A stretch of DNA of 64,000 nt, taken from the sequence record PQ309151.1; one strand, 5' to 3'. Below are positions 24,645 through 43,239 of this stretch, piece by piece. Under the pieces are notes generated by a model. It did no database searches, was not told the DNA's origin, and saw nothing but the letters and a program-made list of their open reading frames with translations. Numbering within the stretch: position 1 is the stretch's first letter; each line of letters begins with the position of its first letter. Made by a program: the position numbers and the translations under genes.

Positions 24645-24655
24645 AAATTCCTCTC

Positions 24656-24677: not shown

Positions 24678-24730
24678 ATAATATGACCTCAAAATTAAAG
24701 TTTTATCTTATTTAACCGGAGAAAGCAGTT

Positions 24731-26803: not shown

Positions 26804-26814
26804 TCTGAGGAATC

Positions 26815-27936
26815 ATGAGCGACGTTACGATTACTCCCGTCTCACATGTTTTCGACGAGACCGGCACTCTTGCCGAGAACTACGTCGAGAACGAACAACG
26901 AGATCTGGCACAGCGCAACATCCGCGCTGCATGCACGCGATACGGTGCTTTCTTCATCGAATCGTTCAAGATCCGGGATGCCAATGGCAACGCCCTGTTG
27001 GCAAACCAATACCAGTTCGGACTCTTCGCTGAAGACCTGTCCGAAAAGACTGGTAAGGAAATCGCTGGTGCGGTGATCATCACCGACCCGGCTGTGATTT
27101 CGCCTGTCTTCATTGACTATCAGTGTGTTGGTGGTCCGTGGGGTGCAACCAACGAGCAGATCATTGATCTGTTCACTGCGCTGATGACTGACGATCGTCC
27201 TGTGACGTGGCCGAACATTCTGGGTAAACCGGATGGCTTCAAGCCCGCTCACCACTTCCAGGACATCGGCGACCTGTTCGGTGCTGAATACATCGTCCAG
27301 GCTCTGGAGCGTTTGGGTAACGCGTACCTCATGGGCGACAATGCGTCGCACGATGAGATTCTGCGTAACATCGATCAGTTGCGTTCGGACATGAATCAGG
27401 GCTTGACTGACCTGAGCAATGCTCTGAAGGCTTACGCTGATGCAGGCGATGCAAAGGTTGAAGCAGACCTGAGCAACGAAGCCCAGCTTCGTGCAGCAGC
27501 AGACACCCAGCTGCAGAACAACATCAATTCGGAAGCGACGACACGCGGCAACGCGGATACGACGTTGCAGACGAACATCAACAACGAAGCGACTGCTCGT
27601 GCGAATGCCGTCACTGGCGTTCAGAACAACCTGAACTCGGAAATCACCGCTCGTCAGAATGGTGACTCCGCGCTCAATACGAGCATCACGAACGTGAACA
27701 ACGCACTGACGGCGCACACCTCGGCAACGGGTAACGTGCACAATCTGACTCCGGCTCAGCTGGGCGTTTACACGATCGCTCAGGTCGATGCGCTGATCAA
27801 CAGCGTCAACGCGAGCCTCGGCAACTACGTCAAGAAGAATGCCGGTGAAGATACGTCCGTTACCGTTAGCGGTGGCGTGATCTACATCTTCATGTCGGGC
27901 GCATGGCGTGCTGTGTGGCCGCCGCAGTGGCAGTAA
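26815..27936 (+). CDS. Tail fibre protein, paralog of 24731-26803, with a coiled-coil stalk
   Basis: Related N-terminus (FDETGTLAENYVENE..WPNILGKP..HH..D..G.EY), EAxxRxxADxxLQxNI repeats, GNVHNLTPAQ, and a C-terminal IYIFMSGAWR. Confidence 0.72.
   Translation: MSDVTITPVSHVFDETGTLAENYVENEQRDLAQRNIRAACTRYGAFFIESFKIRDANGNALLANQYQFGLFAEDLSEKTGKEIAGAVIITDPAVISPVFIDYQCVGGPWGATNEQIIDLFTALMTDDRPVTWPNILGKPDGFKPAHHFQDIGDLFGAEYIVQALERLGNAYLMGDNASHDEILRNIDQLRSDMNQGLTDLSNALKAYADAGDAKVEADLSNEAQLRAAADTQLQNNINSEATTRGNADTTLQTNINNEATARANAVTGVQNNLNSEITARQNGDSALNTSITNVNNALTAHTSATGNVHNLTPAQLGVYTIAQVDALINSVNASLGNYVKKNAGEDTSVTVSGGVIYIFMSGAWRAVWPPQWQ
27478..27687 (+). repeat. About four ~18-aa coiled-coil repeats (ExxxRxxADxxLQxNIxx)
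   Basis: EAQLRAAADTQLQNNINS, EATTRGNADTTLQTNINN, EATARANAVTGVQNNLNS, EITARQNGDSALNTSI. Confidence 0.8.
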
Positions 27937-27987
27937 AATAAAAAGCAACTAGCCGTCGGGATATAGTGACTCTATAGGGGATTGATC

Positions 27988-28476
27988 ATGACTGTCGTCT
28001 TGAAAGATATCTCGTTGGATGATCTACATCTCGACGAGCTGTTGTTCCATCCGTATCCGTACGAACAGCAGATGGTGAAGTTCATCACTGCAGACGGTCG
28101 GCAACTTACTCCGTTCGATGCATCTGAAGTAGGCAAGATGCGTATGTTCGGTACGATCAAAATCGAAGGCATGGAAAAGATCTCGAAGAAGGTCTTTGAT
28201 GCCCTGAAGAAATTTTCTCATGATGGTCCGATGACCTGTCATGTTTTCATCGCAGCTGAGAATGCCCCCAGCTTTCCGGATCACACCGATCCGGACGGCG
28301 TATTGCTCTATGTCGTCGATGGTGTAAAAAACCTGATGATCGACGATCAGTTCCATACGCTTAACGCCGGTCAGTCGGTTTTCATTCCGGCTGGCACCAA
28401 ACACCGTGCCATCAATTATTCTTCTTCAATCATGATGAGCATTGGATTTGAAAAGTTCATTGTGGAGAAGCTCTAA
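27988..28476 (+). CDS. Cupin/JmjC-type (Cupin_4/RoxA-like) Fe(II)/2OG oxygenase
   Basis: SFPDHTD..VLLYVVDGVK and SVFIPAGTKHRA give an HxD...H facial triad. Confidence 0.78.
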   Translation: MTVVLKDISLDDLHLDELLFHPYPYEQQMVKFITADGRQLTPFDASEVGKMRMFGTIKIEGMEKISKKVFDALKKFSHDGPMTCHVFIAAENAPSFPDHTDPDGVLLYVVDGVKNLMIDDQFHTLNAGQSVFIPAGTKHRAINYSSSIMMSIGFEKFIVEKL

Positions 28477-29537
28477 TGCATCGCACCGTTTATATCAAGA
28501 CCACTGAAGCTTGCAATCTGAATTGCAAGCACTGCTTCACAGGTGGCAATAGTCCCAAGCGCACGTTTCTGGATATCGAAAAGACCATCGATTGGACTCG
28601 TCGCTTGTTCGAACACCTCGATTTCAATGACCACACGCATTTCGAATTGCATGGTGGCGAACCGTTCCTCCTGCCCGTCAAGCAGTTGAAGGAACTCACC
28701 AAGGGCATTCGTACGTGGGGTCCGGTCAAGCATTCGATTGGTGCGACCACGAATCTGGTTTACAAGTTGGACGATGAACTGCTCTGGTTCATCCGTAACG
28801 ATCTCGAAAGTATCGGCACGTCCTGGGATCCGGACATTCGCTTTGCTAACGAAAAGCAGAAGAATCTCTGGACCGACAACCTGAAGAAGGTCATCGATGT
28901 CGCCGACGTCACGCTGAATGTCAGCGTGTCACGCAAGCTGATCGAGATGAATGTGAGCGACCTGCTCATGTTCCTGAGGGATACGGGCTGTTATCGGGTT
29001 CAGTTCGAACGTATCACGACGAACGGCAATGCTCGCAAGAATCTGGCATTGTTCCCGACGAATGCAGAAATCAACGACTGGTATCTTCGCCTGCACAATG
29101 CAACTGAAAAGTTGAGCGCTCGCGGATGGTTCCATAACGCATCCCTGGAGGATGTGTATGCAAAATTCGAAAATGGCAATGCTTGCTCTGGCACGTTCTG
29201 TCGGAATTGCGAAGAGTCCATCTTTACGCTCAACGCGGACGGCAGCATTGGGGGTTGCGCCAATTCGGCGCCGGAGGAATCCTTTGGACACATCGATGAT
29301 GATATCGGAGAACTGTTCGATGCCTCCGGACGAATCGATAACATTGTTAAAGAGCGCATGCGCCACGAGCAGTGTTACGTTTGCCCTGTGGCCGCTTATT
29401 GCGGTGGTGATTGCCACCGACTGGCTTGGGAAGGTGATGTCTGTCCCGCCCCACGCCAACTGATGAAGAAGCTGGCAGGCTTGCCGCTGGAGGAGTCTGC
29501 CATCCGGAAACGATTTATTCCCATTGCGGCGGTTTAA
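28476..29537 (+). CDS. Radical SAM/SPASM peptide-maturase-like enzyme (#1)
   Basis: CNLNCKHC, HGGEP, and SPASM cysteines CSGTFCRNC..GC..CYVCPVAAYCGGDC..C. Confidence 0.92.
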   Translation: MHRTVYIKTTEACNLNCKHCFTGGNSPKRTFLDIEKTIDWTRRLFEHLDFNDHTHFELHGGEPFLLPVKQLKELTKGIRTWGPVKHSIGATTNLVYKLDDELLWFIRNDLESIGTSWDPDIRFANEKQKNLWTDNLKKVIDVADVTLNVSVSRKLIEMNVSDLLMFLRDTGCYRVQFERITTNGNARKNLALFPTNAEINDWYLRLHNATEKLSARGWFHNASLEDVYAKFENGNACSGTFCRNCEESIFTLNADGSIGGCANSAPEESFGHIDDDIGELFDASGRIDNIVKERMRHEQCYVCPVAAYCGGDCHRLAWEGDVCPAPRQLMKKLAGLPLEESAIRKRFIPIAAV

Positions 29538-29543
29538 GGAAAT

Positions 29544-30104
29544 ATGAGTACATATCGCACAGACGTCGACGCCGTAGCCCAGGCGTACGTACGTAACAAC
29601 GTGAACGGGGCGATCAACCCGTATCGCTCGGATTGGGCCCCGGGCTATGTCAACATGGGCATGATTGGCTGGATCTCCCAGGATCCGAACCAGTCGCATC
29701 CGTCGTGGAATGGCGAACTCAGTACCGCTGGCAACACGATGGTGACAAACCAGGTTCGCAATGCGATGATCGACCTGGGCAACTACTACGCGTGGATTGC
29801 CAAGGGTCATTACGGCCTGCAATCAACCAACCAGAGCGGTGCCAACTACCTGCAATACGAAGGCTACGGCTACTTCGTGTTCAATGGTGCGGCTCCGGGC
29901 GCTCAGGATCATGCGAACCGTGTGTCGGCAGATCTGAACACCGCTGGTACCATGAACGGGACGATCCGTTATCAGCAGCTGATCGATTTCTACAACTTCG
30001 CGTGGGGCATCATCTGGAATCGTAAGGACGACCTGCAAGTCGAACTCACGGTTTGCCATTCGTCGTGCCACACTTCGTGCCACGGCTCGCGCGGTCGTCG
30101 TTAA
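29544..30104 (+). CDS. Putative substrate/precursor protein with C-terminal (CHxS)3-RGRR core
   Basis: Ends in VCHSSCHTSCHGSRGRR*. The only Cys residues are in this tail. Lies directly downstream of rSAM/SPASM #1. Confidence 0.65.
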   Translation: MSTYRTDVDAVAQAYVRNNVNGAINPYRSDWAPGYVNMGMIGWISQDPNQSHPSWNGELSTAGNTMVTNQVRNAMIDLGNYYAWIAKGHYGLQSTNQSGANYLQYEGYGYFVFNGAAPGAQDHANRVSADLNTAGTMNGTIRYQQLIDFYNFAWGIIWNRKDDLQVELTVCHSSCHTSCHGSRGRR

Positions 30105-30114
30105 GGAGAAGAAC

Positions 30115-31185
30115 ATGATCAATCTGTTCGATCGTGTTTACATCAAACACGACAACGTACTCGCCCGTGCTGAAGGTCAGAAGAAGTTGATCATCAGCCC
30201 GAAGGTCAAAGAGATCGCCTATGTGACCGACAAGCTGCAACAGCAGCAAGCCGGCATCATGGGAACGTACGAGACGCTCTCGGATGCTCTCCATTACGTT
30301 GGTGGTCAGGACGCTTTCTGGGTCGGTCTGGCACAAGCCAAGGCAAAAGTCATCATCATCGCAGAGCGCGATGTCGTGGCTGAGTTGCTGATTCAATACT
30401 GGAAGGCGATCTTCAAGGACATCTCGTCCGAAGCAGCTTACCTTCTGTACCAGATCCAGATCAACAACGAAAACCTGCATGCTCACCGTCCGACGGAAAA
30501 GCGCGTGCGTCTGTTCTCGCCCAACACCACCGAAGCCGACATCGAACTGATGTCGAAGGAAGCGTTCGTCGCACTCTTCGACAAGTCGACACCGGCACTC
30601 ATCGACCTGTCTTCGGATATGGCGATGCGTTCGCTTCCTTTCGAATATCTACTGATGTCGTATCTGGCAGATCCGAGCGACGATAGCGTGAAGCGCGTGT
30701 TCTTCCAGAAGCTCGACGCAATCATGCGTTCCAACATCGTTGCCAAGCTGATCGGTGGACGTGAAGAACTCATGTTCGAATCGCACAACTACTATCTGCT
30801 GGAACCGGGCGAAGTCGAGCATCTGATCACCGATCCGATCGCCCACATGAAGGCCAGCGGCCATCTGGCATGGGTCATGGACGAAGCGTTCGTCTATGGC
30901 AATGAAGACGAGATTCTGAAGAAGTATTCGCTGGATCAGATCCGCTTCTTCTTCGAACAGATCAAGCGTCTGGTGCTGGAAGACGAATCGATCTTCGTCG
31001 CCATCGAATGCATCAAGAACAAGCAGTATGCCAAGCTGATCGAATACGACATCGGTGACCATCAAGGCAACTTCTTCGGCACTGGTGCGTTCGTGAACAA
31101 GATCAATGGTCTGTTGGTCTCGTTCTCGTATCAACTCAAGCGGATGGGCAACCTCAATCTGCTCAAGCAGTACGAACTGAAGTAA
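30115..31185 (+). CDS. Hypothetical protein of the rSAM cluster
   Basis: 356-aa ORF with an AAGGAG RBS and strongly biased codon usage. No recognised motif. Confidence 0.75.
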   Translation: MINLFDRVYIKHDNVLARAEGQKKLIISPKVKEIAYVTDKLQQQQAGIMGTYETLSDALHYVGGQDAFWVGLAQAKAKVIIIAERDVVAELLIQYWKAIFKDISSEAAYLLYQIQINNENLHAHRPTEKRVRLFSPNTTEADIELMSKEAFVALFDKSTPALIDLSSDMAMRSLPFEYLLMSYLADPSDDSVKRVFFQKLDAIMRSNIVAKLIGGREELMFESHNYYLLEPGEVEHLITDPIAHMKASGHLAWVMDEAFVYGNEDEILKKYSLDQIRFFFEQIKRLVLEDESIFVAIECIKNKQYAKLIEYDIGDHQGNFFGTGAFVNKINGLLVSFSYQLKRMGNLNLLKQYELK

Positions 31186-31191
31186 TGCGAC

Positions 31192-31232
31192 TACTACCTG
31201 ACTCCTTCGGGAGTTGGGTAGTATCTTTTTTT
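31192..31232 (+). terminator. Intrinsic terminator inside the rSAM cluster
   Basis: Stem TACTACCTGACTCC / GGAGTTGGGTAGTA with a C(UUCG)G loop followed by TCTTTTTTT. Confidence 0.85.
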
Positions 31233-31279
31233 CTATTGGTTACACTACTTTTTTGACCTATCCCACTGAGGAAAACGAA

Positions 31280-32629
31280 ATGAGTGAAGAGAAGAAAGGA
31301 ATTGAATTCGGCAAGGAATGGATTGGCGAACTGCCGATTCAGAAACTGATGCGCGAAGATGCTGAACGTCGGCACGCCGACGGTGAAGTGCATGAGCTCG
31401 GCGAAATGAAGAAGACGTACTTTCCGGCGTTGGGTAAACTCGTCGAAATGCCGGCCAAGAAGATGCCGGAAGCAATTCCGCCCTGGGAAGAACTCCCCAA
31501 CGAAGCAGCAAGCGATGACATGTCGGACGAAGGCCCTATCCAGTTCGCGCCTATCGAAAATGGGCCGGCGCAAGTCGGATTGGGAGTGAAAGCATTCTGC
31601 GACGAACTGCTCAACGGCACTAAACTGGACGCCACCCCTGCTGTGAAGGTGACGTCGGAAGTTCAATCGCCTGAAGAAGCCGCGCAGGGTTATTCCTGGA
31701 AACTGAACATCGAAGTCAAGGACGGCAAAGTGGCCAATACTGAAACGGTTCCGGCAGAAAATGTCGGCGATGGTTGGGGTGCAGAACTCCCGCCCGAACA
31801 GCAAACGCCGGAAGTCCAGACCGGCATCCCGGAAGACAAACTCGTCGAAGTCACGGTGCCGTTCCCCGCTGACAAGATTCGCATGTACTTCCAGGATAAG
31901 TCCCTCTTCTTCATCGCGAACTATAGCGAGTCGAAGCTGAAGGGTCAGGCGTTCCTCACGTATCTGTCGAACATCAACATCCCGTCGGATGTGAAGTTCA
32001 ATACGCCGATCAGCTACGAAGAGTACGCTGAAGTCATGAAGGCGTACATGGAACAGCCGGGCGTGATCAACTGCGCCGGTCTGCACGTCATGGCAGCTGA
32101 AATGCTGCTGGTGGCCAAGGGCTTGCCGTATGAGCGTTCGCCTTACGCTCTGCCGATCGACGAGAAAGTGATTCTCATGTTCATCGAGGAACACTACGAG
32201 TTGGTACAGAAGTGGCTGCACTTCATCGACTCGACGCAAGTGTTCGCGTTGCGTTCGATCAAGGCGCTGAACGATCACTACAAGCCGGAAGAAGTCTTCC
32301 CGGTTATCGAAGATCGCAGCTACGTGGGCTGGAATATCGCGCAGCTGTATCGCATTCCGGAATTCATCGCGGTGTACTTCTCGATCGAGAACGCGGAGTA
32401 CAAGCTGTCGTACTTCAAGGACCAGTATGAAGAGTACATGTTCAAGAACGAGACGCTCGCCAAGTACTTCTCGTCGCAGAACAACTTCGCTGCGTTGTAC
32501 TTCATGCACTACGCAACGGGTCTGTTCAAGCCCGAAGACATCAATCACGGCCTGTTCAAGATCGGCGTGTTCGACAAGGCAGGTCCGTACTACGTGGATC
32601 GACCGTATGAAGCTACCATTCAAGTCTGA
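31280..32629 (+). CDS. Hypothetical protein of the rSAM cluster (acidic, Pro-rich N-terminal half plus helical C-terminal domain)
   Basis: Start moved to the ATG at 31280 (GAGG RBS, after the terminator). Confidence 0.72.
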   Translation: MSEEKKGIEFGKEWIGELPIQKLMREDAERRHADGEVHELGEMKKTYFPALGKLVEMPAKKMPEAIPPWEELPNEAASDDMSDEGPIQFAPIENGPAQVGLGVKAFCDELLNGTKLDATPAVKVTSEVQSPEEAAQGYSWKLNIEVKDGKVANTETVPAENVGDGWGAELPPEQQTPEVQTGIPEDKLVEVTVPFPADKIRMYFQDKSLFFIANYSESKLKGQAFLTYLSNINIPSDVKFNTPISYEEYAEVMKAYMEQPGVINCAGLHVMAAEMLLVAKGLPYERSPYALPIDEKVILMFIEEHYELVQKWLHFIDSTQVFALRSIKALNDHYKPEEVFPVIEDRSYVGWNIAQLYRIPEFIAVYFSIENAEYKLSYFKDQYEEYMFKNETLAKYFSSQNNFAALYFMHYATGLFKPEDINHGLFKIGVFDKAGPYYVDRPYEATIQV

Positions 32630-33707
32630 TTCGAACTCTTCGATGACGCTTGATAAGGCATCCCAATACCACCTAAGCCTGAGCTTGGAGTGGTTAAAGG
32701 GATGCCAGTTCAACTGTAAGGGTTGCCACGTCAATAAACAGATGGGGCTTCCCTTTTCAGGTGACGACCTGGCCAATCTGAATAAGTGGGTATCGAGCAT
32801 GCGCGATAAAGGCAATTACTTGCCGACCATCGTGTTTCTTCAGCCCACTGACTTTCTGACTGCCGAGAACACCGTCGACATTCTGAAGAGTCCGTACGCC
32901 TATTCTGTCCTGTCTGTCTTTAAACGTTTGTCGTTGCAAACGACATTCCTGAATATGGATCGTGCGGTAGAGATCGCTTCGATTCTGAAAGCGCGTTTCT
33001 TCCACATGGAGCTTGAGCTCAACTTCATCATTGAGCCCGAGAAAGTCAACAACGAAAAGTATCTCGAAACGATTCGTGCCAATCGTGCGAAGTTTATCGA
33101 GATGCTGGATTGGAAGAAGCACATCGCGTCCTTCGCCATCATGAACGTATATGAGTACGATCAGGTGAAGAGGAACGATGTGAAGAAGATCCTGTCGGAT
33201 TACCAGGCTCTTCACGAGAAGATCAAGGACAAGTTTAATTCCACGATCGACTTTAACTTCTCCATGACCCGTAATCCGTGGTGGAGTAACGAAGACGTAG
33301 CAGATGCTGTACGCAGCGTCAGTCGAATCTTCGATGGTGGAGTAGATAACGTTTTCAACCAGACCATCCGATTCTCATTCGGTAAGCTGGAAGACTCGTC
33401 GATCGAAAAGCATTACAACTGGCATCAAGGACACTTGTATGTGTCGCCGATGATCTATGAGCGCATTGCGTCGTTCCATCGGAAGCTGAAGATCCCTCAT
33501 GTCCTCTACTCTGTGTATGAGACTGAAGACTTCGAACGCCGGTTGCTGATCGATCAGTATCACAACTCCGAAACAAAAACCGAGTGCAATTCGTGTCGAT
33601 ATCAAGCCTCTTGTATTGAACGCAATGTCCTGACGTTTATGGACATGCATGAAATCAAGGACTGCATCATCGCCCGCAAAGCTCTCGATGCCATCAACGT
33701 CATCTGA
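32607..33707 (+). CDS. Atypical radical SAM-fold protein (#2)
   Basis: CQFNCKGC and C-terminal CNSCRYQASC..C. The GGE motif position reads LQPTDF. Start is the ATG at 32607 or 32643. Confidence 0.75.
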   Translation: MKLPFKSDSNSSMTLDKASQYHLSLSLEWLKGCQFNCKGCHVNKQMGLPFSGDDLANLNKWVSSMRDKGNYLPTIVFLQPTDFLTAENTVDILKSPYAYSVLSVFKRLSLQTTFLNMDRAVEIASILKARFFHMELELNFIIEPEKVNNEKYLETIRANRAKFIEMLDWKKHIASFAIMNVYEYDQVKRNDVKKILSDYQALHEKIKDKFNSTIDFNFSMTRNPWWSNEDVADAVRSVSRIFDGGVDNVFNQTIRFSFGKLEDSSIEKHYNWHQGHLYVSPMIYERIASFHRKLKIPHVLYSVYETEDFERRLLIDQYHNSETKTECNSCRYQASCIERNVLTFMDMHEIKDCIIARKALDAINVI

Positions 33708-33711
33708 GACG

Positions 33712-33742
33712 CACATGGATAGGCTTCGTGCCTATCCATGTG
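33712..33742 (+). terminator. Intergenic hairpin inside the cluster
   Basis: 13-bp stem CACATGGATAGGC / GCCTATCCATGTG with a weak U-tract, followed by TTATG. Confidence 0.6.
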
Positions 33743-33757
33743 TTATGTGAGGAAATC

Positions 33758-34777
33758 ATGGACAACGAAATTCTGAACGAATTGCTCGCAAGCAAAGTAC
33801 AAGACTCCACCGAGATCGAACACCATCTCTTTGAGTTCTGCAACCTGAACTGCTCTTTCTGCGGTCAGGATCATGACTCGAAGGTCGGTATGGAATCGAT
33901 CATCGAGAAAGCCCACAAGACCGTGGACTTCATCTTTCATTCGAAGAAAACGAAACACACCATCAACGTGATGGGTGGTGAGATCTTCAATGACAAGGTC
34001 GAGACCACTACCATCCTGGATTACTTTCAGTTCTACGAGATCATCCGTAAGACCTGTCAGGATCTGGGTGTGGAATTCCAGATCAACTGGGTCACGAACC
34101 TGATCTTCACGGAAAACCGTGAGATGGTCGATTGGCTCATGGATAAGACGGGCGAGCATTGCAAGATCTCGACCTCTTACGACTTCGCAGGGCGTGGATT
34201 GGACATCAACAAGCATCTGGTCTTCACCCGCAACCTGGAGCGTTACAAGAAGTACATTGGCGTCGTGGGATTCGTTCTCACTCGACCAGCTATCCGAAAG
34301 CTGATGAACGCCAAGGATATGTTCTTCATCAAAACGCTCTATCCGAACTTCCCGCTTTACTTCGACTGGTATGTGCCGGAGAAGTCCGCTGAGAAGATGA
34401 TGCCATCTGAGCAGGAGATGCTCGACGCATTACTCTACGTAGCGGAACACTATCCGAACGTGGAGCCAGTCAAATCCATGCTGGAGAACACGCACAACAA
34501 GATGACGTGCTTCAGCCTGAACAAAACGACGATATTGCCCGATGGCAAGGAAGTCACTTGTCGCTACCTCGAATACGACAAAGAAAAATTTATTAACGAC
34601 GTTGATTATTCGAGCAACGCAAATATCATCCAGGCACATCTTGATCGTAACGAATGCTATTCGTGTCCTCACTTTGACCGCTGCACATTTCGGTGTTTTG
34701 TACAAGCTGACTGGGCAGGACTCGAACGACTCCCAACCTGTTTCATCCGAACCTTCTTCGACAAAACTGCATCATGA
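33758..34777 (+). CDS. Radical SAM protein with C-terminal Cys cluster (#3)
   Basis: CNLNCSFC, MGGEIF, and CFSL..TC..CYSCPHFDRCTFRC..C. Confidence 0.88.
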   Translation: MDNEILNELLASKVQDSTEIEHHLFEFCNLNCSFCGQDHDSKVGMESIIEKAHKTVDFIFHSKKTKHTINVMGGEIFNDKVETTTILDYFQFYEIIRKTCQDLGVEFQINWVTNLIFTENREMVDWLMDKTGEHCKISTSYDFAGRGLDINKHLVFTRNLERYKKYIGVVGFVLTRPAIRKLMNAKDMFFIKTLYPNFPLYFDWYVPEKSAEKMMPSEQEMLDALLYVAEHYPNVEPVKSMLENTHNKMTCFSLNKTTILPDGKEVTCRYLEYDKEKFINDVDYSSNANIIQAHLDRNECYSCPHFDRCTFRCFVQADWAGLERLPTCFIRTFFDKTAS

Positions 34778-35301
34778 AAATCATTCTTATCGCAGCTGAA
34801 GCAGCAAACAAAGTCATCGGCAACAACGGCCAAATGCCGTGGCACATTCCCGAAGACCTGCAACACTTCAAGAACGAAACGAAAGGCAGTGCAGTAATCA
34901 TGGGCCGCAAGACCTGGGAATCGCTTGGCAGCAAAGCTCTGCCCAATCGCACCAACGTTGTCGTCTCGAAGACCCTGGGTCCTCTGGAACATGCTCATTC
35001 GGTACGCAGCTTCCGTACTGCCGTCAAGGGTCTGATCGATAGTGGTTACGATAAGGCTTATGTGATCGGTGGCGAATCGCTCTACCGTGCAGCAATGCCG
35101 TGGGCAAGCCAGATCGTCCTCACGAAGCTGTACAAGTCGTACGAAGGCGACGCGCATTTCCCGGATATGGATCCGCGTGACTGGGTTCAGTGGCAAGGAA
35201 GAGAAAACTTCCACAACCCGGCACAGCCGTTCAGTGTTCACTACTACACGGCAATCAATCAACCTGACGTCGCCAAATGGGTCGACCTCATCAAGGACTG
35301 A
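34774..35301 (+). CDS. folA: Dihydrofolate reductase
   Basis: Motifs VIGNNGQMPWHIPEDLQHFK, IMGRKTWES, LPNR, VIGG..LY and EGDAHFP. Confidence 0.93.
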   Translation: MKIILIAAEAANKVIGNNGQMPWHIPEDLQHFKNETKGSAVIMGRKTWESLGSKALPNRTNVVVSKTLGPLEHAHSVRSFRTAVKGLIDSGYDKAYVIGGESLYRAAMPWASQIVLTKLYKSYEGDAHFPDMDPRDWVQWQGRENFHNPAQPFSVHYYTAINQPDVAKWVDLIKD

Positions 35302-35302
35302 C

Positions 35303-35902
35303 ATGAACATCACTCTGATTGCCTTGATGGCAAACAACGGCGTCATCGGCTCGGAAGGCAACAAGCCGATGTTCAACGCAGAACACGCGAAGTTCCTGAA
35401 GGAATACGTGAAGGGCAAACCGGTCGTCATGGGCCGTAAGACCTTTGAAGCACTGGGTGGTCCGATCGATGGCGTAGCGCAAACCTTCGTCTTCAGTCGT
35501 CAGCCGGGTTCGTTCGCTGAAGGTATCCCGACCGTACTGAGTGTTGACGGTTTCTTCATCTCGGCTTTCGATCGCATGAAGGCACATGAAGCTGTGGTGA
35601 TCGGTGGTGCATCGACTTTCCATGCATTCTACCCATGGGCAGACACGATGCATATCACTCACATTCGCGACAACGTCCAGGGGGATCGTTACTTCCCGCA
35701 GTTCCCCGGATGGCGTCCTGGCCTCATCAACGCTCGTTATGAGCAAGGTGAAACCCAGTTCGAACGGATCGACTATCGTCGCGACAGCTATGATCCGTAT
35801 CCGGCTACCACGGTCGAAGATCTGAACACGGCCAGTATCTTGAACCATATCCGTAAACTACGCGGGTATCGAGCAAAGCCGATGCAACTGAACGAGGAAT
35901 AA
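35303..35902 (+). CDS. Divergent DHFR-fold protein lacking folate-binding residues
   Basis: Retains VIG, VMGRKTFE, VIGG and GDRYFP. PWxxPEDL is replaced by PMFNAEHA, and LPNR is lost. Start at the ATG at 35303. Confidence 0.8.
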   Translation: MNITLIALMANNGVIGSEGNKPMFNAEHAKFLKEYVKGKPVVMGRKTFEALGGPIDGVAQTFVFSRQPGSFAEGIPTVLSVDGFFISAFDRMKAHEAVVIGGASTFHAFYPWADTMHITHIRDNVQGDRYFPQFPGWRPGLINARYEQGETQFERIDYRRDSYDPYPATTVEDLNTASILNHIRKLRGYRAKPMQLNEE

Positions 35903-35908
35903 GATTCC

Positions 35909-36559
35909 ATGGCTGGCAAACCACGTAAACGCGAGCCGATGAAGGGAAAACGCTTTGGTCGTTTGCTAGTCCTGGATGAAGGCAAGAGAGGCTATAACGG
36001 TACGAATCATTGGAGATACCACTGTCGATGCGATTGCGGTAAAGACACGTATCCTCGAAGCGTGGACCTTTTGATCGGTCGTGCGAAAAGCTGTGGGTGT
36101 CTTGTACTTTCAAGGCGCCATGGTAAGAGTGGTATCCCGGAGTACTGGGCATGGATGCATATGAAGAACCGCTGCCTCAATCCGAATGACGCCGACTACC
36201 ATCGTCATGGTGGTCGTGGGATCGGAGTATTCCAGGAGTGGGTCGAATCGTTCGCTGCTTTCTTTCGCGACATGGGCTTCAAGCCCAGCAAGGAACATGT
36301 CTTAACTCGGATAGATCCTGATGGTCATTACGAGCCAGGTAACTGTCAGTGGAAGGTGCCTGAGAAGAAAGCGGCTCCTGTTCCAAAAGGACCCATGCAC
36401 TTTTACATGGGGGAATCGAAAACCCTGGAAGAATGGGCTGAGATTTTCAAGATGGACCCAGCCGTCATTCAGGATCGATTAGACCGCGGCTTACCTTTCA
36501 CACTCGCTATATTGAGGTTCTCCAATGTCGCACCCAAGCTTAATCGTCAAACCGACTGA
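35909..36559 (+). mobile_element. Free-standing HNH-type homing-endonuclease-like gene
   Basis: GKRFGRL, CRCDCG..KSCGC, EY.AW..MK.RC, GGRGI and RIDPDGHYEPGNCQW. Overlaps the next gene by 35 nt. Confidence 0.75.
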
Positions 36560-37601
36560 AGCGTGTAACTTTAAGTGCACGTTCTGCTCGTCAACGGACA
36601 TCCAGGGCGAATCTCCTAACCTCGATGTCGAGTACGTCAAGCTTTACCTGGAGCGTTTCCCCCAGACTCCGACCATTATCGTGAACGGCGGCGACCCGCT
36701 CATGATGAAACCTGAGTACTACTGGTCGATTCTGAAGATTATCGAGGACATGGGTCTTAAGACCACGCTCTCGTTTACAAGCAATCTGTGGGCTTTCTAT
36801 AAAAAGCCTAGTCTGTGGGTGGATTTGTTCCGCCATCCGCTTGTAGGGGTCTCTACGAGCTTCCAATACGGCAATGCGCGCCTCAAGGGCGATCTCACTC
36901 CGTTTACGGAAGAAGAATTCTGGAAAATCTCCGACATGATGCTCGAACTGGTCGGATACCGTCCTTCCTTTATCGCAGTCATCACGAAAGAAAATGAACA
37001 TACCGCGATCCAGACTGTCGAGCTTGCTAAACGCATGGGTGTTGTCTGCAAGCTTAACTATGCAATGGCGTCGGGACCTAAGACGCAATTCAAAGGCATC
37101 ACCATCGGCAACGCAGACTCCACTTACGTCCTTGCAGATATCTACGAAAAGTATATCGAGATCGCCCAGGCGGGTCTCGCGCCGTGGGAACATAACACCC
37201 AGGTCATGGTGAATCGCCTCAAAGGCCAAGCCAACCAGATCTGTCCTCAGGCCAGAGAGTGTGATGTAGGTATCCGAGCACTCCAGCCTGGTGGTAAGTA
37301 TTACAGCTGTGGAGCATTTGGGGATGATGGATTATTTCCGATTGACTTCGCTAATGAAATGGCTGGTGGATTCGAAAGACCACTCTTTCATCAGCCCGAG
37401 CTCCAATCGCTCAAGAACTCGTGCTACGAGTGTCCCATGTTCGAGATCTGCAATGGATGCCGTAAAACCATTCACGACCTCAAACGTCTTGACCTGGTGG
37501 AAGTCCACTGCTCCAAGATGAAGACGCTAGCGCCTACGATCATCGACATTAACGGGCTCAAAGGACGCATCCATCCTACGCCCTACGTGAAGGAGACATA
37601 A
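36525..37601 (+). CDS. Radical SAM/SPASM protein (#4)
   Basis: CNFKCTFC, NGGDP, and CPQAREC..YSC..CYECPMFEICNGC..C. Confidence 0.9.
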   Translation: MSHPSLIVKPTEACNFKCTFCSSTDIQGESPNLDVEYVKLYLERFPQTPTIIVNGGDPLMMKPEYYWSILKIIEDMGLKTTLSFTSNLWAFYKKPSLWVDLFRHPLVGVSTSFQYGNARLKGDLTPFTEEEFWKISDMMLELVGYRPSFIAVITKENEHTAIQTVELAKRMGVVCKLNYAMASGPKTQFKGITIGNADSTYVLADIYEKYIEIAQAGLAPWEHNTQVMVNRLKGQANQICPQARECDVGIRALQPGGKYYSCGAFGDDGLFPIDFANEMAGGFERPLFHQPELQSLKNSCYECPMFEICNGCRKTIHDLKRLDLVEVHCSKMKTLAPTIIDINGLKGRIHPTPYVKET

Positions 37602-38146
37602 TGGAACTGCTGCAACCTTGGAAAACCACCATCGGTAAACTCTCAGTACTCGACTTCGTTGACATCGACGCAATGCTCAATGAAGTCATGCAACACCCTG
37701 CAGTCATGGAGAAGCCCGTTAACGGATCTCTACGAGTGAAGTATGAAGAGTTTCCGATCTGTTCAGATGTACTCGAACACAAGCTCAAGCCTCAGGTAGA
37801 GCGGTACATCAGCACAGTCACTACCCACACTCCAAAGCGTCTATCGTGGAGTAGCTGGTTTCACATCTGTATGCACGGTAATGGACTCATCCCCCATTAC
37901 CATGACGAAGCACTCAACTCCGTTCTGTACCTTACGACCTCCAAAGCTAACCTGGTACTCAGAGACCCGTTAGCCTCCCAAGCCCGTCAATGGCCTCAGG
38001 AGATGCGTAAGGTAATACACGCCGATCAACAGTTCCATCCAGTTAAAGGTGACTTCGTAATCTTCCCAGGTTACGTAGATCACTACGTCATGTCCGATGA
38101 GCCAGACTTCAGGATCTCCATGGCAACAGACTGGATCTTCAGGTAG
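37601..38146 (+). CDS. 2OG-Fe(II) oxygenase (PF13759/TIGR02466-like), paralog A1
   Basis: Motifs PHYH, SVLYL, LVLRDP, GDFVIFPGYVDH and FRIS. Confidence 0.82.
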   Translation: MELLQPWKTTIGKLSVLDFVDIDAMLNEVMQHPAVMEKPVNGSLRVKYEEFPICSDVLEHKLKPQVERYISTVTTHTPKRLSWSSWFHICMHGNGLIPHYHDEALNSVLYLTTSKANLVLRDPLASQARQWPQEMRKVIHADQQFHPVKGDFVIFPGYVDHYVMSDEPDFRISMATDWIFR

Positions 38147-38152
38147 ACCGTT

Positions 38153-39094
38153 ATGCTCGCTAATGAAACAGGCGTACTCAATGTAAGCCTGAACCCAACG
38201 TACTACTGCAACTTCAGATGTGACTTCTGTTACCTGACGAAGAAGCAACTCAACACACAGAACTATCTGCCCATAGAGGGTATCAGAAAGAAGTTCACAG
38301 AGATCGTGAGCTCAGGTCACGAGATCGGTCATGTGGATCTGTACGGTGGGGAGATCATGTTGCTCCCGACAGATTACATACTCGCCATTGGGGATCTGAT
38401 GGATGAGTTTCAGGTAGAGGATTGTGAGATCATCACGAACCTTTCTGCCTTCAAACAGCAGGTCGTAGAAGACCCTCGTTTTGGCCTCTCAGTGAGCTTC
38501 GATTGGGAGTCGAGAGCGCAGTCTGAGCATGTGTGGCAAAACATGCTAAAAGTCCGCAAACCCTTTACTGTATTGACTTTGGGTGTCAGGGGTGTGCTTG
38601 ACACAGATCCAGCTACCCTAGTCGAATCCATAAACCTGCTTGAGAACTGTAAAGCGTGGGAGATCAAGCCCTACAGCAAGAACCAGGCTAACCAGCTGGA
38701 TGTCACGGATAAAGAGTTTGAAGAGTTCGTCAAGAAGATCATCGAGTACCCGAACAAGAACTTCGAGTTCCTCAATGAGACGAAGCTGAGGACTATCAAG
38801 TTCCGTGACTACAATGCATTCTCTGACAACCACGTCTACATCACGCCTAAGGGAAACTTTGGTGTGCTGGAGTTCGATGAGAATGATCGCGAGTACTTCC
38901 TGGAGCTTAAGACCATGGACGATTACGTTCAATGGACTCAGGGAGAGAAGGCTCGTGTCATGAGTAACGAGACGTGTGGTAGCTGTCAGTACATGGGCAA
39001 GTGTGCGTCTGAACATCTGCGTGATGTGAAGTCCATGGAAGATGGCTGCAACGGATTCTACAATCTGATTCAGTGGTATGAGGCAAGGCCATGA
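38153..39094 (+). CDS. Radical SAM protein with C-terminal Cys cluster (#5)
   Basis: CNFRCDFC, YGGEIM and CGSCQYMGKCASEH..C. Confidence 0.88.
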   Translation: MLANETGVLNVSLNPTYYCNFRCDFCYLTKKQLNTQNYLPIEGIRKKFTEIVSSGHEIGHVDLYGGEIMLLPTDYILAIGDLMDEFQVEDCEIITNLSAFKQQVVEDPRFGLSVSFDWESRAQSEHVWQNMLKVRKPFTVLTLGVRGVLDTDPATLVESINLLENCKAWEIKPYSKNQANQLDVTDKEFEEFVKKIIEYPNKNFEFLNETKLRTIKFRDYNAFSDNHVYITPKGNFGVLEFDENDREYFLELKTMDDYVQWTQGEKARVMSNETCGSCQYMGKCASEHLRDVKSMEDGCNGFYNLIQWYEARP

Positions 39095-39648
39095 ACATTG
39101 AAGAAATGTGGACGACTCCGATCGGTACTGACAACTACCTGAACTTTGTTCGTGCTGGAAAGTTTCTGGATGAAGTCATGAGTCATCCGGAGATCATGGC
39201 GCAAACGAAGGTTGGTAGTCTTCGTATCTCGGATCGTCAGGAAGAGTTTCCTCATCTGACGCAGTTCATCCACAACCGACTACTCAGTCGAATGATCGAG
39301 TACGTGTACCAGTCGTTCGGCCATAAGGCGAAGAACATTACCTGGTCGGCTTGGGTACATACCTGCTTTCATGGGCAGGGGTTGGTTCCGCATTACCACA
39401 TGGGTGATGAGCATGTGGCGTCGATCCTCTATCTGACTGAGTCCAAGGCAGGACTCGTTGTGAGAGATCCGCGCGCTAACATGGTACGCAACTTTCCGCA
39501 GGAGATCCTGAAGGTGAGCTTTCAGGATTATCAGCACAATCCGCGTGAAGGTGACTTCATTATCTTCCCTACTTATCTCGATCACTACGTGATGGCAGCA
39601 GAGCCTGACTTCCGTGTGTCGATCGCAATCGACTGGTGCTTTCAATGA
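39091..39648 (+). CDS. 2OG-Fe(II) oxygenase (PF13759/TIGR02466-like), paralog A2
   Basis: Motifs PHYH, SILYL, LVVRDP, GDFIIFPTYLDH and FRVS. Colinear with 37601-38146. Confidence 0.82.
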   Translation: MNIEEMWTTPIGTDNYLNFVRAGKFLDEVMSHPEIMAQTKVGSLRISDRQEEFPHLTQFIHNRLLSRMIEYVYQSFGHKAKNITWSAWVHTCFHGQGLVPHYHMGDEHVASILYLTESKAGLVVRDPRANMVRNFPQEILKVSFQDYQHNPREGDFIIFPTYLDHYVMAAEPDFRVSIAIDWCFQ

Positions 39649-40319
39649 TCAACCCTCTCACGCAAGATGACTTCGATCGTTTCAAAGAGACGATAAAGAA
39701 CTCGTCATATGCTCGCATACCCGAGACGAAGCCGTTCAATGCGGATGACTTCCTGGGTGACTATCTGACGAAGGGCTTCTACTCGTTCAGTGCTGCCGGG
39801 TTACTGGCGCCGATCGAGATCCAGCGCTTCAAGGTGGTGACTGTCAAACACGAAGACAACTGCTTTCATGCAGAAGGTCACGAGTTCCATGACAACTACA
39901 TGCAGCTGTCGATCGAACAACTCGCTCGCGATTTGCGGCGTCTGTTGTATCTGGTGCCTGCTGAACTCCAGTTCGACTTCTACACGGATTCGGTCAATGA
40001 CCACGTGCAGATGTGGCATAGCGATGCGCAGTATGCGATGCCTGGTCAGAACGCCACGATCAACTGCTTCTTTAACAACACGTCGGAGACGATCGGTGGT
40101 CGTTTCGACATGGCACCTTACTCGGCTGATATCATTGGCACGAAGAAGCTGCCCGGCTATTTCACGTCGATCTATCCGCAGTGCTACGACGTCATTATCT
40201 TCAACCAGAACCGGAACTTCCTGCATAAGGCCATTCCGTCGGTGATGCAGCGGCGCATGTTGTCGTTTGCAGCGACGTTCGAAGACATCAACCCTCTTCT
40301 TCCTAACTGGCAGTCATGA
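39645..40319 (+). CDS. 2OG-Fe(II) oxygenase (prolyl-hydroxylase-like), paralog B1
   Basis: WHSD, IGGRF, FLHKA and RRML. ATGA coupling at 39645. Confidence 0.78.
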   Translation: MINPLTQDDFDRFKETIKNSSYARIPETKPFNADDFLGDYLTKGFYSFSAAGLLAPIEIQRFKVVTVKHEDNCFHAEGHEFHDNYMQLSIEQLARDLRRLLYLVPAELQFDFYTDSVNDHVQMWHSDAQYAMPGQNATINCFFNNTSETIGGRFDMAPYSADIIGTKKLPGYFTSIYPQCYDVIIFNQNRNFLHKAIPSVMQRRMLSFAATFEDINPLLPNWQS

Positions 40320-40897
40320 TCGACACTGGTGAATTCATTAGCGAGTATCTCACCAAAGGCTTTTATCGTTTCGATGCATCGGAGGTCCTCTCCAGATTCG
40401 ATTTAAAAGCTTTTGGGACGATCAAGAAAACGGACGCAACATTCGACACGGAAGATCCGGCAGAGCGTTACAAGGCTTATACGCCAGCGCAAACGGTACT
40501 CCTGCGTCAGTTGTTGAAGGATCTGTCTGAAGTCTACTTCAGCGACCTCAATCACGAGCTCCGATTCAACGATATGTGGGCGTCAGCTAATCCCTACACC
40601 TACAGCTGGCACAACGATACGCTTCGTTGCTGGCCTGGCTTCAATAGCAATGTGAACTGCTACTTCGATTCGATGGATGAGTCAGTTGGCGGCGCATTGC
40701 AGATGCATCCGATGGTGGAAGACTACGATTCGATCGCAGACGACAGTCCTCTCATCGCTGAGGTCTTTCCTCAGAAGTTCGACATCATCGTCATCAACCA
40801 GAACAGCACGTTCCTGCACCGTGTCCGTCATACGGAACACAAGCGTACGATGCTCTCGTTCGCAGCAGGCTTCTTCGATTTCAATCCGGTCTTCTGA
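40316..40897 (+). CDS. 2OG-Fe(II) oxygenase (prolyl-hydroxylase-like), paralog B2
   Basis: WHND, VGGAL, FLHRV and KRTML. Colinear with 39645-40319. Confidence 0.78.
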   Translation: MIDTGEFISEYLTKGFYRFDASEVLSRFDLKAFGTIKKTDATFDTEDPAERYKAYTPAQTVLLRQLLKDLSEVYFSDLNHELRFNDMWASANPYTYSWHNDTLRCWPGFNSNVNCYFDSMDESVGGALQMHPMVEDYDSIADDSPLIAEVFPQKFDIIVINQNSTFLHRVRHTEHKRTMLSFAAGFFDFNPVF

Positions 40898-40899
40898 TC

Positions 40900-41319
40900 A
40901 TGCAAGAATGGAAGATGTGGCAGGAGTTGTACAACAACCTGGTGACCGACCACTCGGATGCTGGCCACAAACACAAACGGGAGATGCAAAGACCGACTGT
41001 GGAGAATGCGCTCTTTTACATTCGGGAACAGGCTGACTACGGCATCTACCCGGCAAAGTCCTACATGGTGGCGATCATCTACGCTACCAAACTCCAGGAA
41101 GTCTATGGAGAGGATTTCTACGAAGTTCTGGATGATCCTGATCTGCTGTACGGTCAGGATGAGTTCTTCGTTCCTTATTCGCATGACAAAAAGTTCTACG
41201 ATGAAATCATCGAAGCACTGAAGTCGATTCCGAACTGGATTGAAGGAGGTTGGGCACCGAAGACGGTTGAGTACTTCCACCTGGAGTGTACTGAAGCGGG
41301 CGTAGCATCAATCAGCTGA
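40900..41319 (+). CDS. Hypothetical protein closing the rSAM cluster
   Basis: 139-aa acidic ORF starting 2 nt after the previous stop. Confidence 0.7.
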   Translation: MQEWKMWQELYNNLVTDHSDAGHKHKREMQRPTVENALFYIREQADYGIYPAKSYMVAIIYATKLQEVYGEDFYEVLDDPDLLYGQDEFFVPYSHDKKFYDEIIEALKSIPNWIEGGWAPKTVEYFHLECTEAGVASIS

Positions 41320-41351
41320 TCCTATAGTGTCCGACTAACTAGGGGATTATT

Positions 41352-41699
41352 GTGGGTTTCGACCTGACAAAGCTGAATACTGCTTTTCAGACACTGACCA
41401 CGTGGGTAACTGCTGGTCTGGCAAAGAAAGCAGATGCAACCGCGACTTCCAACGCGCTGGCCACTAAAGCCAATGCTTCGGATCTTGCAACCACCAACAC
41501 CAATCTGACCAACTTGACCACTACGGTGGGAACGAAGGCAGATGCGACGGCCACGTCGAATGCTCTGGCTACCAAAGCAGACGCAACGGCTACAACCAAC
41601 GCACTAAACGGCAAACAGAGTACCGTCCTCACGGGTACGGCTGCTCCTGGTGCTGGCGTAGGCAATAATGGCGACGTGTTTCTCGTCACTGATAGCTGA
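41352..41699 (+). CDS. Short tail-fibre stalk-like protein with tandem KADATATxNAL repeats
   Basis: GTG start and AGGGG RBS. Three KADATAT[ST]NAL repeats. C-terminal GTAAPGAGVGNNGDVFL. Confidence 0.65.
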   Translation: MGFDLTKLNTAFQTLTTWVTAGLAKKADATATSNALATKANASDLATTNTNLTNLTTTVGTKADATATSNALATKADATATTNALNGKQSTVLTGTAAPGAGVGNNGDVFLVTDS

Positions 41700-41707
41700 T
41701 GCACAGA

Positions 41708-41741
41708 CATACACTCCTGGGCTTGCGCCCAGGAGTGTATG
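41708..41741. terminator. Bidirectional hairpin between convergent genes
   Basis: 15-bp stem CATACACTCCTGGGC / GCCCAGGAGTGTATG with a TTGC loop. Confidence 0.8.
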
Positions 41742-41752
41742 CTCTATGTCTG

Positions 41753-42442: not shown

Positions 42443-42443
42443 G

Positions 42444-43172: not shown

Positions 43173-43239
43173 GATGTTCTCGGGTAAAAGATCATAAAAT
43201 CTTGTGACATCAGATACAATTCTTCCCTAAGGTTTCGGT

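Follow-up and report, generated by a model that had tools for sequence, protein, structure and literature searches.

Radical S-adenosylmethionine (radical-SAM) maturation of proteins has so far been described chiefly for peptide natural products of bacteria, to which a single bacterial defence effector was added in 2026. The closest known analogue of the locus treated here is the HXS anti-phage system, in which HxsA, a protein with five basic His-x-Ser repeats, is matured by the radical-SAM enzymes HxsB and HxsC and by HxsD; maturation adds 8 Da on its SHRSS motif, and the protein then reaches the periplasm; it binds DNA and prevents phage DNA from entering (PMC13128918). The stretch analysed here, called the window, comprises 64,000 nucleotides and matches with 100% identity positions 1-64000 of Ralstonia phage RsoM3USA (PQ309151.1, 225.6 kb), a jumbo phage related to phiKZ that belongs, like RSL2 and RSF1, to the Chiangmaivirus group. 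At 27988-41319 it carries an island of radical-SAM and 2-oxoglutarate (2OG) oxygenase genes together with the gene of a 186-residue protein, the 29544 product or tail protein, which ends in Cys-His-x-Ser units. This cassette shares with HXS a folded protein bearing basic tandem His-x-Ser units, more than one radical-SAM enzyme, small accessory proteins and a biology set at the phage-cell envelope or DNA-entry interface. HXS was not named in the preliminary description of this DNA.

The explanation preferred here, at a probability of about 0.6, is that 14 genes of the island form a dedicated protein-maturation cassette, with the 29544 product as its substrate and the matured protein in the fibre apparatus of the virion. 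These genes encode one JmjC-like cupin, five radical-SAM enzymes (three with a full SPASM pattern and two with a partial one), four 2OG oxygenases, the accessory proteins u30, u31 and u40, and the tail protein. The preliminary description had reported 17 co-directional genes, and every open reading frame (ORF) was recovered at its coordinates in agreement with the GenBank annotation of PQ309151.1. Its account of their coupling was also correct (8 of the 16 junctions overlap, by 1, 4, 23 or 35 nt), as were the CxxxCxxC motif and C-terminal Cys cluster in each of five genes (28476, 32607, 33758, 36525, 38153), the five cupin/2OG oxygenases (Cupin_2 in 27988, PF13759 in 37601 and 39091, and the paralogue pair 39645/40316), the two dihydrofolate reductase (DHFR) genes, the HNH gene and the Cys/His/Ser tail at 30054-30101. 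The assignment of all 17 genes to one system did not hold, as the DHFR pair and the HNH gene are lineage-specific insertions that lie outside the pathway.

The proposed substrate and its modification site are the following:

29544-30104, plus strand: TAIL, candidate substrate of 186 residues and 20.7 kDa, with a folded N-terminal domain and a C-terminus of three Cys-His-x-Ser units and Arg-Gly-Arg-Arg.
30054-30101, plus strand: near-invariant 16-residue tail, CHSSCHTSCHGSRGRR in the window, the proposed modification site.

The three His-x-Ser units, each preceded by Cys, occupy residues 171-182, and the tandem His-x-Ser repeat of HXS is present in this product. In 13 close homologues, with identities to the window protein as low as 33%, the tail was constant save for one position. 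Moreover, a profile search of 1.84 billion cluster representatives retrieved 273 at E <= 0.001, ranging from 59 to more than 1000 residues, many of which align over the final 40-50 profile positions alone and terminate exactly there; their N-terminal parts differ while the tail stays nearly invariant in most of the 273 clusters. Among 152 representatives, the percentages of residues identical to the window along the tail were Cys 98, His 97, Ser 63, Ser 93, Cys 95, His 95, Thr 12 and Ser 76, followed by Cys 95, His 99, Gly 68, Ser 90, Arg 96, Gly 93, Arg 99 and Arg 100, so that the Cys, His, second Ser and Arg-Gly-Arg-Arg columns are 93-100% identical. By our arithmetic the tail pattern is expected by chance at about 1e-14 per site; chance is excluded because the pattern occurs hundreds of times and its neighbours are always alike. 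The number of units is variable, spanning three to four or more among relatives, with at least four in L147, L148, L153, L154 and L156.

Two further forms of the tail were observed. In a minority form (P0015, P0019, P0020, P0022, P0026) the second and third Cys are missing, the first Cys-His and the final His-Ser-Ser-Arg-Gly-Arg-Arg are kept and the middle reads Tyr-Val-Ala-Pro-Pro, which, at the level of sequence, hints at a different cross-link partner. In L147 (positions 3907-4266 of a contig assigned to Dysosmobacter segnis, Firmicutes), many Cys-His-x-Ser blocks are separated by short Asn-Val-containing linkers and followed by an Arg-rich end.

The linkage of the tail gene with the enzyme genes was assessed in a set of loci collected by matching DNA to a degenerate pattern that covers the tail and its stop codon, which yielded at least 120 IMG/VR contigs (5-276 kb) and 34 stretches of GTDB genomes; for 154 loci besides the window, gene maps were drawn by calling ORFs and searching them with the island proteins. 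All locus counts given here and below are among the matches listed. The recurrent order was cupin, rS1, tail gene, u31, (u30), rS3, rS4, (oxygenase), rS5, u40 and oxygenase, where rS1 to rS5 denote the radical-SAM genes; in a second architecture, two tandem tail genes of 125-140 codons were followed by one to six copies of rS2. In the 68 loci that extend at least 4 kb beyond the tail gene on its downstream side, u31 was found in 67/68 and a radical-SAM gene likewise in 67/68, and where both flanks were long enough a radical-SAM gene stood beside the tail gene in 38/38 loci. The synteny of the enzymes with the tail ORF, proposed in the preliminary description as a check, was therefore borne out by a fixed order and near-obligate co-occurrence in diverse phages and Bdellovibrionota.

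The cassette was found in only four lineages of 50,697 phage records, namely the Chiangmaivirus group, Atu_ph07, Phosso and pPa_SNUABM_DT01, and their gene maps agree. The island is also present, about 80% identical at the nucleotide level, in eight more genomes of the Chiangmaivirus group; the Burkholderia phages FLC6, FLC8 and SURPRISE13 are among them. The system is not peculiar to one jumbo phage: it is widespread and also occurs on contigs of about 40 kb, which are as long as the genomes of small phages, and in some of these the cassette takes up about a fifth of the sequence. The 34 stretches from GTDB species genomes belong mostly to metagenome-assembled genomes of Bdellovibrionota, including contigs of 2.4 and 2.8 Mb, and hold the same partner families; the other matches in bacterial genomes look like phage contigs binned into metagenome-assembled genomes. 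In Bdellovibrionota the neighbours include urocanase, signal peptidase II and extra B12-type radical-SAM genes (L131-L162). A pilin-like protein with a Peptidase_S74 endosialidase-chaperone domain (detected in the member scanned, from L135) represents a family located beside the cassette in three Bdellovibrionota loci.

In the literature searched on the motif, on phage radical-SAM/SPASM systems and on RsoM3USA, no description of the motif or the cassette was found, and the papers on FLC6, SURPRISE13 and DT01 merely list the cassette genes. The cassette is probably a widespread, previously undescribed form of radical-SAM protein maturation tied to phage tail fibres. At the syntenic place of the related 280-kb Ralstonia phages RP12 and RP31, two YomR-like fibre genes are followed by a different radical-SAM set, composed of a 125-residue ORF, a 537-residue radical-SAM gene, and Fe-S oxidoreductase, MoaA-like and MgoB-like genes (PMC5468394, Table S2). 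This set may be a replaced or second kind of cassette.

The layout of a precursor beside SPASM maturases across genomes is that of a cluster for a ribosomally synthesised and post-translationally modified peptide (RiPP), and the preliminary description had offered a released peptide as one outcome. In this alternative the N-terminal 170 residues would be a leader and the 16-residue core would be freed at lysis as a bioactive or metal-chelating product. Long leaders are known in proteusins and lend this alternative a precedent, and repeated cores are present in one relative (L147). It is nevertheless very improbable. No peptidase or exporter (ABC-transporter) match was obtained for the cassette proteins in NCBIfam and Pfam, and neither a leader peptidase or exporter nor a variable core nor a RiPP-recognition element (RRE) was found in the cassette. 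The core is invariant, whereas RiPP cores usually vary, and the whole Atu_ph07 protein was detected in virions at 35% coverage. The N-terminal part is in addition a confidently folded domain: the AlphaFold2 (AF2) model of the tail protein had a predicted local distance difference test (pLDDT) score of 86.7, with the last 8 residues disordered. Missing peptidase and exporter genes, a folded N-terminal domain and an invariant core together tell against release.

No fold counterpart of this model was found in PDB, and its matches in BFVD were uncharacterised phage or family proteins only, Atu_ph07 gp170 among them; the tail protein and u31 are modelled as new folds. The 29544 product had no NCBIfam or Pfam match at E <= 0.01 and no PHROG with a function, and none of the tail protein, u30, u31 and u40 could be placed in an informative family with NCBIfam, Pfam, PHROGs or PADLOC.

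The putative maturases are encoded by five radical-SAM genes:

28476-29537, plus strand: rS1, radical-SAM/SPASM enzyme directly upstream of the substrate gene, with CxxxCxxC and a 7-Cys SPASM pattern.
32607-33707, plus strand: rS2, probable radical-SAM enzyme, divergent and with only part of the auxiliary Cys cluster, identified by invariant Cys and an hhalign match to the rS3 family.
33758-34777, plus strand: rS3, radical-SAM/SPASM enzyme with CxxxCxxC and 7 invariant SPASM Cys.
36525-37601, plus strand: rS4, radical-SAM/SPASM enzyme, the best conserved of the set (Radical_SAM E 8.6e-11; SPASM Cys pattern).
38153-39094, plus strand: rS5, radical-SAM enzyme whose auxiliary Cys cluster is partial (Radical_SAM at 30.1 bits, cutoff 29.5; Cys pattern).

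Pfam Radical_SAM (PF04055) scored above threshold for 36525 and 38153, while 28476 and 33758 fell slightly short. A SPASM pattern with all 7 Cys was found in 28476, 33758 and 36525, and CX2CX5C...C only in 32607 and 38153. The rS1 protein, whose gene adjoins the tail gene in most loci, matched the NCBIfam SPASM domain TIGR04085 at 31.7 bits against a cutoff of 27 and gave weak matches to DynA, PapB and anSME, the nearest solved structure being anSME 4k37 (E 8e-5). The rS4 homologues of Atu_ph07, Phosso and DT01 are 55-57% identical to it. The case of rS2, a probable radical-SAM enzyme judging from its Cys residues, is the weakest of the five: it had no Pfam match and its profile matched the 33758 family weakly (hhalign probability 43%, E 2.5e-4), with C33, C37, C40, C327, C330, C336 and C353 invariant in 18 relatives. 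All named maturase families (DynA, PapB, anSME, cyclophane enzymes, HxsB, HxsC) scored far under their curated cutoffs, the SPASM peptide and protein maturases outside HXS at 17-49 bits against equivalog cutoffs of 300-650.

Other assignments of these enzymes were tried and rejected. Viperin reached 43-46 bits against a cutoff of 180 and covered the N-terminal cluster region alone, PADLOC returned generic viperin-core matches only for the cassette, and MoaA, the name in the GenBank annotation, reached 39 bits against a cutoff of 284. DNA or nucleotide hypermodification was dismissed as well, since DHFR is lineage-specific and no QueE- or viperin-like match extends past the shared radical-SAM core.

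The likeness to HXS raises the alternative that the matured His-x-Ser/Arg-rich tail acts on nucleic acid or an entry channel and not as a structural cross-link, either in superinfection exclusion, as a defence borne by phage or predator, or as an aid to or protection of the phage's own DNA entry against HXS-type barriers. The tail combines three His-x-Ser units with four basic residues, and the HxsA repeats are likewise basic and bind DNA once matured; weak best-in-class matches to HxsB and HxsC appear among the many radical-SAM matches; and the Bdellovibrionota copies lie among chromosomal housekeeping genes, as would be expected of a cellular defence. We regard it as unlikely, because membership of HxsA-D fails (no matches, or 24-30 bits against cutoffs of 268-370), PADLOC offers nothing beyond the generic viperin core, and the tail protein has neither a peptidoglycan-binding domain in the Pfam scan nor a signal-like N-terminus visible in its sequences. 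The cassette is also co-directional with, and right behind, late tail-fibre genes, and a fifth of a 40-kb contig is heavy for accessory exclusion. This alternative partly overlaps the virion-fibre explanation if the protein travels in the virion.

The proposed further modification would be carried out by five oxygenases:

27988-28476, plus strand: CUP, JmjC-like cupin and probable Fe(II) protein hydroxylase (Cupin_2 E 1.3e-11).
37601-38146, plus strand: OXa1, 2OG-Fe(II) oxygenase of PF13759 (33 bits against a cutoff of 27; 47% identity to 39091).
39091-39648, plus strand: OXa2, 2OG-Fe(II) oxygenase of PF13759 (37 bits against a cutoff of 27).
39645-40319, plus strand: OXb1, 2OG-oxygenase-like paralogue of 40316, with WHxD...H...R invariant in the family.
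40316-40897, plus strand: OXb2, 2OG-oxygenase-like, with a weak PF13640 match and invariant WHxD...H...R.

The characteristic residues of 2OG oxygenases, HxD/E...H and a 2OG-binding Arg/Lys, are present in the PF13759 pair and, as WHxD...H...R, in 39645/40316. In CUP (162 residues), HxD...H was invariant in 24 relatives. Its profile matched the histidyl hydroxylase MINA53 (E 1.4e-6), with generic cupins scoring equally or better, and JmjC_2 (PF08007) reached 19.9 bits against a cutoff of 22. CUP lies within 2 kb upstream of the tail gene in 56/104 loci with such a flank.

Three accessory proteins and a putative transcription signal complete the cassette:

30115-31185, plus strand: u30, conserved accessory protein of 356 residues with no family or PDB sequence match.
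31280-32629, plus strand: u31, of all partners the one found most constantly with the tail gene, with a conserved domain at 31769-32626 and a variable acidic N-terminal extension.
40900-41319, plus strand: u40, small conserved accessory protein, present in 27 loci and mostly placed behind rS5, with no family match.
31189-31225, plus strand: intrinsic-terminator-like hairpin and T-run that separate u30 from u31 (stem of 14 bp, -22.9 kcal/mol, z -4.96).

By iterative search u30 was found in 87/154 loci. The AF2 model of u31 (pLDDT 85.4) and its sequence gave no match in PDB; its acidic extension (31280-31768, about 160 residues) is missing from most relatives, whose homologues range from 284 to 483 residues, varying even among close relatives. 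When the profiles of u30, u31, OXb and rS2 were compared with PDB sequences, nothing meaningful emerged, the few weak lysozyme and haemagglutinin matches being noise. Because the u30/u31 hairpin is maintained by compensatory changes in RSL2, RSF1 and SURPRISE13, it points to a transcript boundary that sets the substrate block apart from the remaining cassette. The nearly invariant stretch of 50 nt before the u31 start (31226-31279) is possibly a phage promoter, to judge by its conservation. A second hairpin, between rS2 and rS3 (33711-33743; 14-bp stem, -27.2 kcal/mol, z -6.3), has no T-run. Matches to sigma-70-like promoters are depleted in 24000-43500 (4 seen against 16 +/- 3.8 expected), consistent with transcription by the phage's own RNA polymerases.

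The fibre neighbourhood and the virion data bear on the destination of the tail protein. Two genes precede the cassette:

24731-26803, plus strand: virion structural or tail-fibre-like protein of 690 residues, upstream (PHROG virion structural and tail protein families).
26815-27936, plus strand: virion structural or tail-fibre-like protein of 373 residues, directly upstream (phrog_2163 E 5.6e-82, and tail-fibre PHROGs).

The first is conserved in RSL2, RSF1 and SURPRISE13; the second is annotated as 'virion structural protein' and has a homologue at the same place in pPa_SNUABM_DT01. In 73 loci one family of 300-2800 residues with tail-fibre PHROG matches lies directly upstream of the cassette, and it also matches weakly the Peptidase_G2 intramolecular-chaperone domain. 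Some long tail-bearing proteins contain fibre-like or fibre-assembly-like Gly-rich segments (E about 1e-6 to 1e-8, to which composition may contribute). Moreover, the virion proteome of Atu_ph07 lists gp170 at 31.89 kDa with 8 unique peptides and 35% coverage (PMC6102473, Table S5), and gp170 was verified by its computed mass as the tail-bearing homologue. It was detected in gel fragments 1-9 with its peak in fragment 1, at the top, while fragment 2 holds the peak of the 117-kDa sheath and fragment 6 that of the capsid protein (PMC6102473); as its peak fragment lies above that of the sheath, gp170 migrates at a position far higher than its mass would predict. The virion list contains neither u31 nor the cassette enzymes of this phage, and gp165, 168, 169, 171 and 172 went undetected (PMC6102473). 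The virion appendage suggested in the preliminary description has thus gained indirect support from the position of the cassette right after tail-fibre genes and from gp170 in Atu_ph07 virions, the direct data coming from one distant homologue. In the RP31 virion proteome nothing useful was found.

The same neighbourhood fits an alternative in which the tail stays unmodified and serves as a plain metal site, with three Cys and three His per chain and perhaps stacked in a trimer, while the enzymes act elsewhere, on fibre proteins, a small molecule, a cofactor or nucleotides. Metal ions coordinated by His are known from T4 fibre tips, and the four-residue spacing of Cys and His would align them on one helix face; the DHFR genes inside the island of the RsoM3USA lineage and the inferential basis of tail modification favour it too. 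It is nonetheless distinctly improbable: the tail gene is obligately adjacent to SPASM-type enzymes, DHFR occurs in none of the other loci, the enzymes have no likeness to nucleotide-modifying radical-SAM enzymes past the shared core, the repeat number varies, and conservation is near-absolute also at Ser, Gly and Arg, for which a simple metal site has no need.

According to the maturation explanation, the folded N-terminal domain would present a flexible tail of three Cys-His-x-Ser units followed by Arg-Gly-Arg-Arg, on which five distinct radical-SAM enzymes with auxiliary Fe-S clusters would act inside the infected cell, probably forming thioether or carbon-carbon cross-links or oxidising Cys or Ser. 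The JmjC-like cupin and the four 2OG oxygenases would modify it further, hydroxylation of His, Arg or Ser being the most likely reaction, and u30, u31 and u40 would assist, probably as recognition or scaffold factors. The matured protein, without the enzymes, would then enter the virion as part of the tail-fibre apparatus, where the modified tail could be a covalently stabilised or a metal- or nucleic-acid-binding element for adsorption or DNA entry. A dedicated substrate is favoured because a near-invariant tail is carried by divergent proteins and is linked to the enzymes; a peptide or protein maturase function because SPASM-type auxiliary clusters are typical of such enzymes and the cupin profile matches a histidyl hydroxylase; and maturation itself because the number of Cys-His-x-Ser units varies, as in repeated RiPP cores, and because HxsA provides the precedent of a protein matured by two radical-SAM enzymes. 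The earlier claim of a dedicated multi-enzyme modification system for the 29544 product was consequently strengthened by the near-invariant tail, the obligate co-occurrence and the fixed order, and lost its DHFR and HNH members; its chemistry is putative.

Several points weigh against this explanation. The tail as the modified site, the reactions and the role of the product are inferred from sequence, and no specific reaction is assignable to the radical-SAM enzymes because all matches to named maturases fall far under the curated cutoffs. No match to an RRE or a PqqD-like protein was obtained in the cassette proteins. It is also awkward that radical-SAM enzymes, which are sensitive to oxygen, and dioxygenases, which depend on it, would share one substrate in an aerobic host. 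In Bdellovibrionota the copies are situated among housekeeping genes without an adjacent phage-type fibre gene, and the role therefore need not be tied to the virion; the fibre neighbourhood could in part be a shared insertion hot spot. Finally, since the Atu_ph07 particles were purified with polyethylene glycol and 131 proteins were listed (PMC6102473), gp170, a single distant homologue, is possibly contamination or carry-over.

If the tail is modified, the 29544 product would be, within the searched literature, the first enzymatically hypermodified virion protein of such a kind, and a new radical chemistry on Cys, His and Ser would be expected. A 16-residue motif as invariant as a cofactor precursor is found here, and the logic of radical-SAM protein maturation takes the form of a viral cassette that is large, strictly conserved and linked to the apparatus of host recognition. 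If the explanation is true, the cassette would also account for the many environmental phages with as many as a dozen radical-SAM genes, which their description left unexplained (PMC5332604). A bolder proposal, rather improbable in our judgement, is that phages and predatory Bdellovibrionota bring to their attack on a cell a fibre-tip protein whose tail five radical-SAM enzymes and five oxygenases have rebuilt into a protein-derived cofactor or metal centre, an offensive counterpart of the HXS gate; in that event both sides of the conflict over DNA entry and envelope penetration would use radical-SAM-matured His-x-Ser chemistry. Material for answering the question descriptively is at hand in the cultured phages of Ralstonia and Burkholderia and in Atu_ph07 and pPa_SNUABM_DT01.

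Three genes of the island are placed outside the cassette:

34774-35301, plus strand: dihydrofolate reductase (DHFR_1 E 5e-47).
35303-35902, plus strand: second, diverged DHFR-like gene (DHFR_1 E 6e-26; 36% identity to the neighbouring DHFR).
35909-36559, plus strand: HNH homing-endonuclease-like gene, a mobile insertion (PHROG HNH endonuclease E 6e-47).

On this comparison of loci, the functional unit is 14 of the 17 genes and the others are lineage-specific insertions or passengers, because the HNH gene is not at this site in RSL2 or SURPRISE13 and no DHFR was found in the 154 other tail-bearing loci by the island-protein search of called ORFs; the DHFR genes are confined to the lineage of about 220 kb. 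The tandem paralogues (34774-35902) lie between rS3 and rS4 only in that lineage, the distant relatives L005 and L007 having one, and the second paralogue is diverged and bears a C-terminal extension. Homing-endonuclease traffic within the island was also observed: the 35909-36559 gene is at this place in RsoM3USA only, and RSF1 (L003) has a GIY-YIG gene (2715-3632) that separates the fibre gene from the cupin gene, as well as a small HNH gene (10717-10881) between rS3 and DHFR. The small ORF that follows the island (41352-41699) encodes Ala/Thr-rich repeats; as RSL2 lacks it and the versions in RSF1 and SURPRISE13 are different, it is regarded as a variable fibre-like gene outside the cassette.

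Among known systems, CUP resembles the JmjC ribosomal oxygenases (MINA53, NO66, YcfD; JmjC_2) in its cupin fold, its HxD...H and the His/Arg-rich nature of the proposed substrate, and differs in its much smaller size, its JmjC_2 score under the cutoff and the equal or better scores of generic cupins. With the SPASM maturases (anSME, the ranthipeptide enzyme PapB, DynA/DarE, the three-residue cyclophane enzymes XyeB/GrrM/FxsB) the cassette enzymes share CxxxCxxC, the 7-Cys SPASM pattern and a position beside a Cys/His/Ser-rich substrate; in addition, His-x-Ser conforms to the aromatic-x-x motif on which three-residue cyclophanes are formed, and anSME acts on Cys and Ser. They differ in scores far under the cutoffs, the missing RRE, an invariant core on a folded domain and the gathering of five paralogous enzyme families. 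In QhpD/QhpC of quinohemoprotein amine dehydrogenase, a SPASM enzyme installs Cys thioethers in a small subunit that is kept in a larger assembly; no sequence relation to the cassette was detected, and QhpD is a single, non-viral enzyme acting on a periplasmic dehydrogenase subunit. Among the tip and assembly proteins of T-even tail fibres, gp37 holds metal sites and gp38 serves as adhesin or chaperone. The tail gene is, like that of gp38, a small gene directly downstream of a fibre gene, its long relatives contain Gly-rich fibre-assembly-like segments, and its Cys/His content suggests metal binding as in the fibre tip; no homology to gp38 was found, and we know of no maturation enzymes for T-even fibres.

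The comparison with HXS itself leaves the His-x-Ser repeats as the shared element, and membership of that system was rejected by both homology and gene order. HxsA (TIGR03979) and HxsD had no match in any island protein, HxsB (TIGR03978) reached at best 24.9 bits (rS3) against a cutoff of 370 and HxsC (TIGR03977) 30.3 against 267.9, and the HXS order D-B-C-A is replaced by cupin, radical-SAM, substrate, accessory genes and more radical-SAM genes. Unlike HxsA, the tail protein has a Cys before each unit, carries its repeats at the extreme C-terminus, ending in Arg-Gly-Arg-Arg, and lacks a peptidoglycan-binding domain. Five radical-SAM families and five oxygenases stand against the two enzymes of HXS, and the cassette, set after tail-fibre genes, belongs to phages and Bdellovibrionota, whereas HXS is found mainly in Gammaproteobacteria. 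The common His-x-Ser repeats provide a testable tie between this cassette and the DNA-entry defence of HXS.

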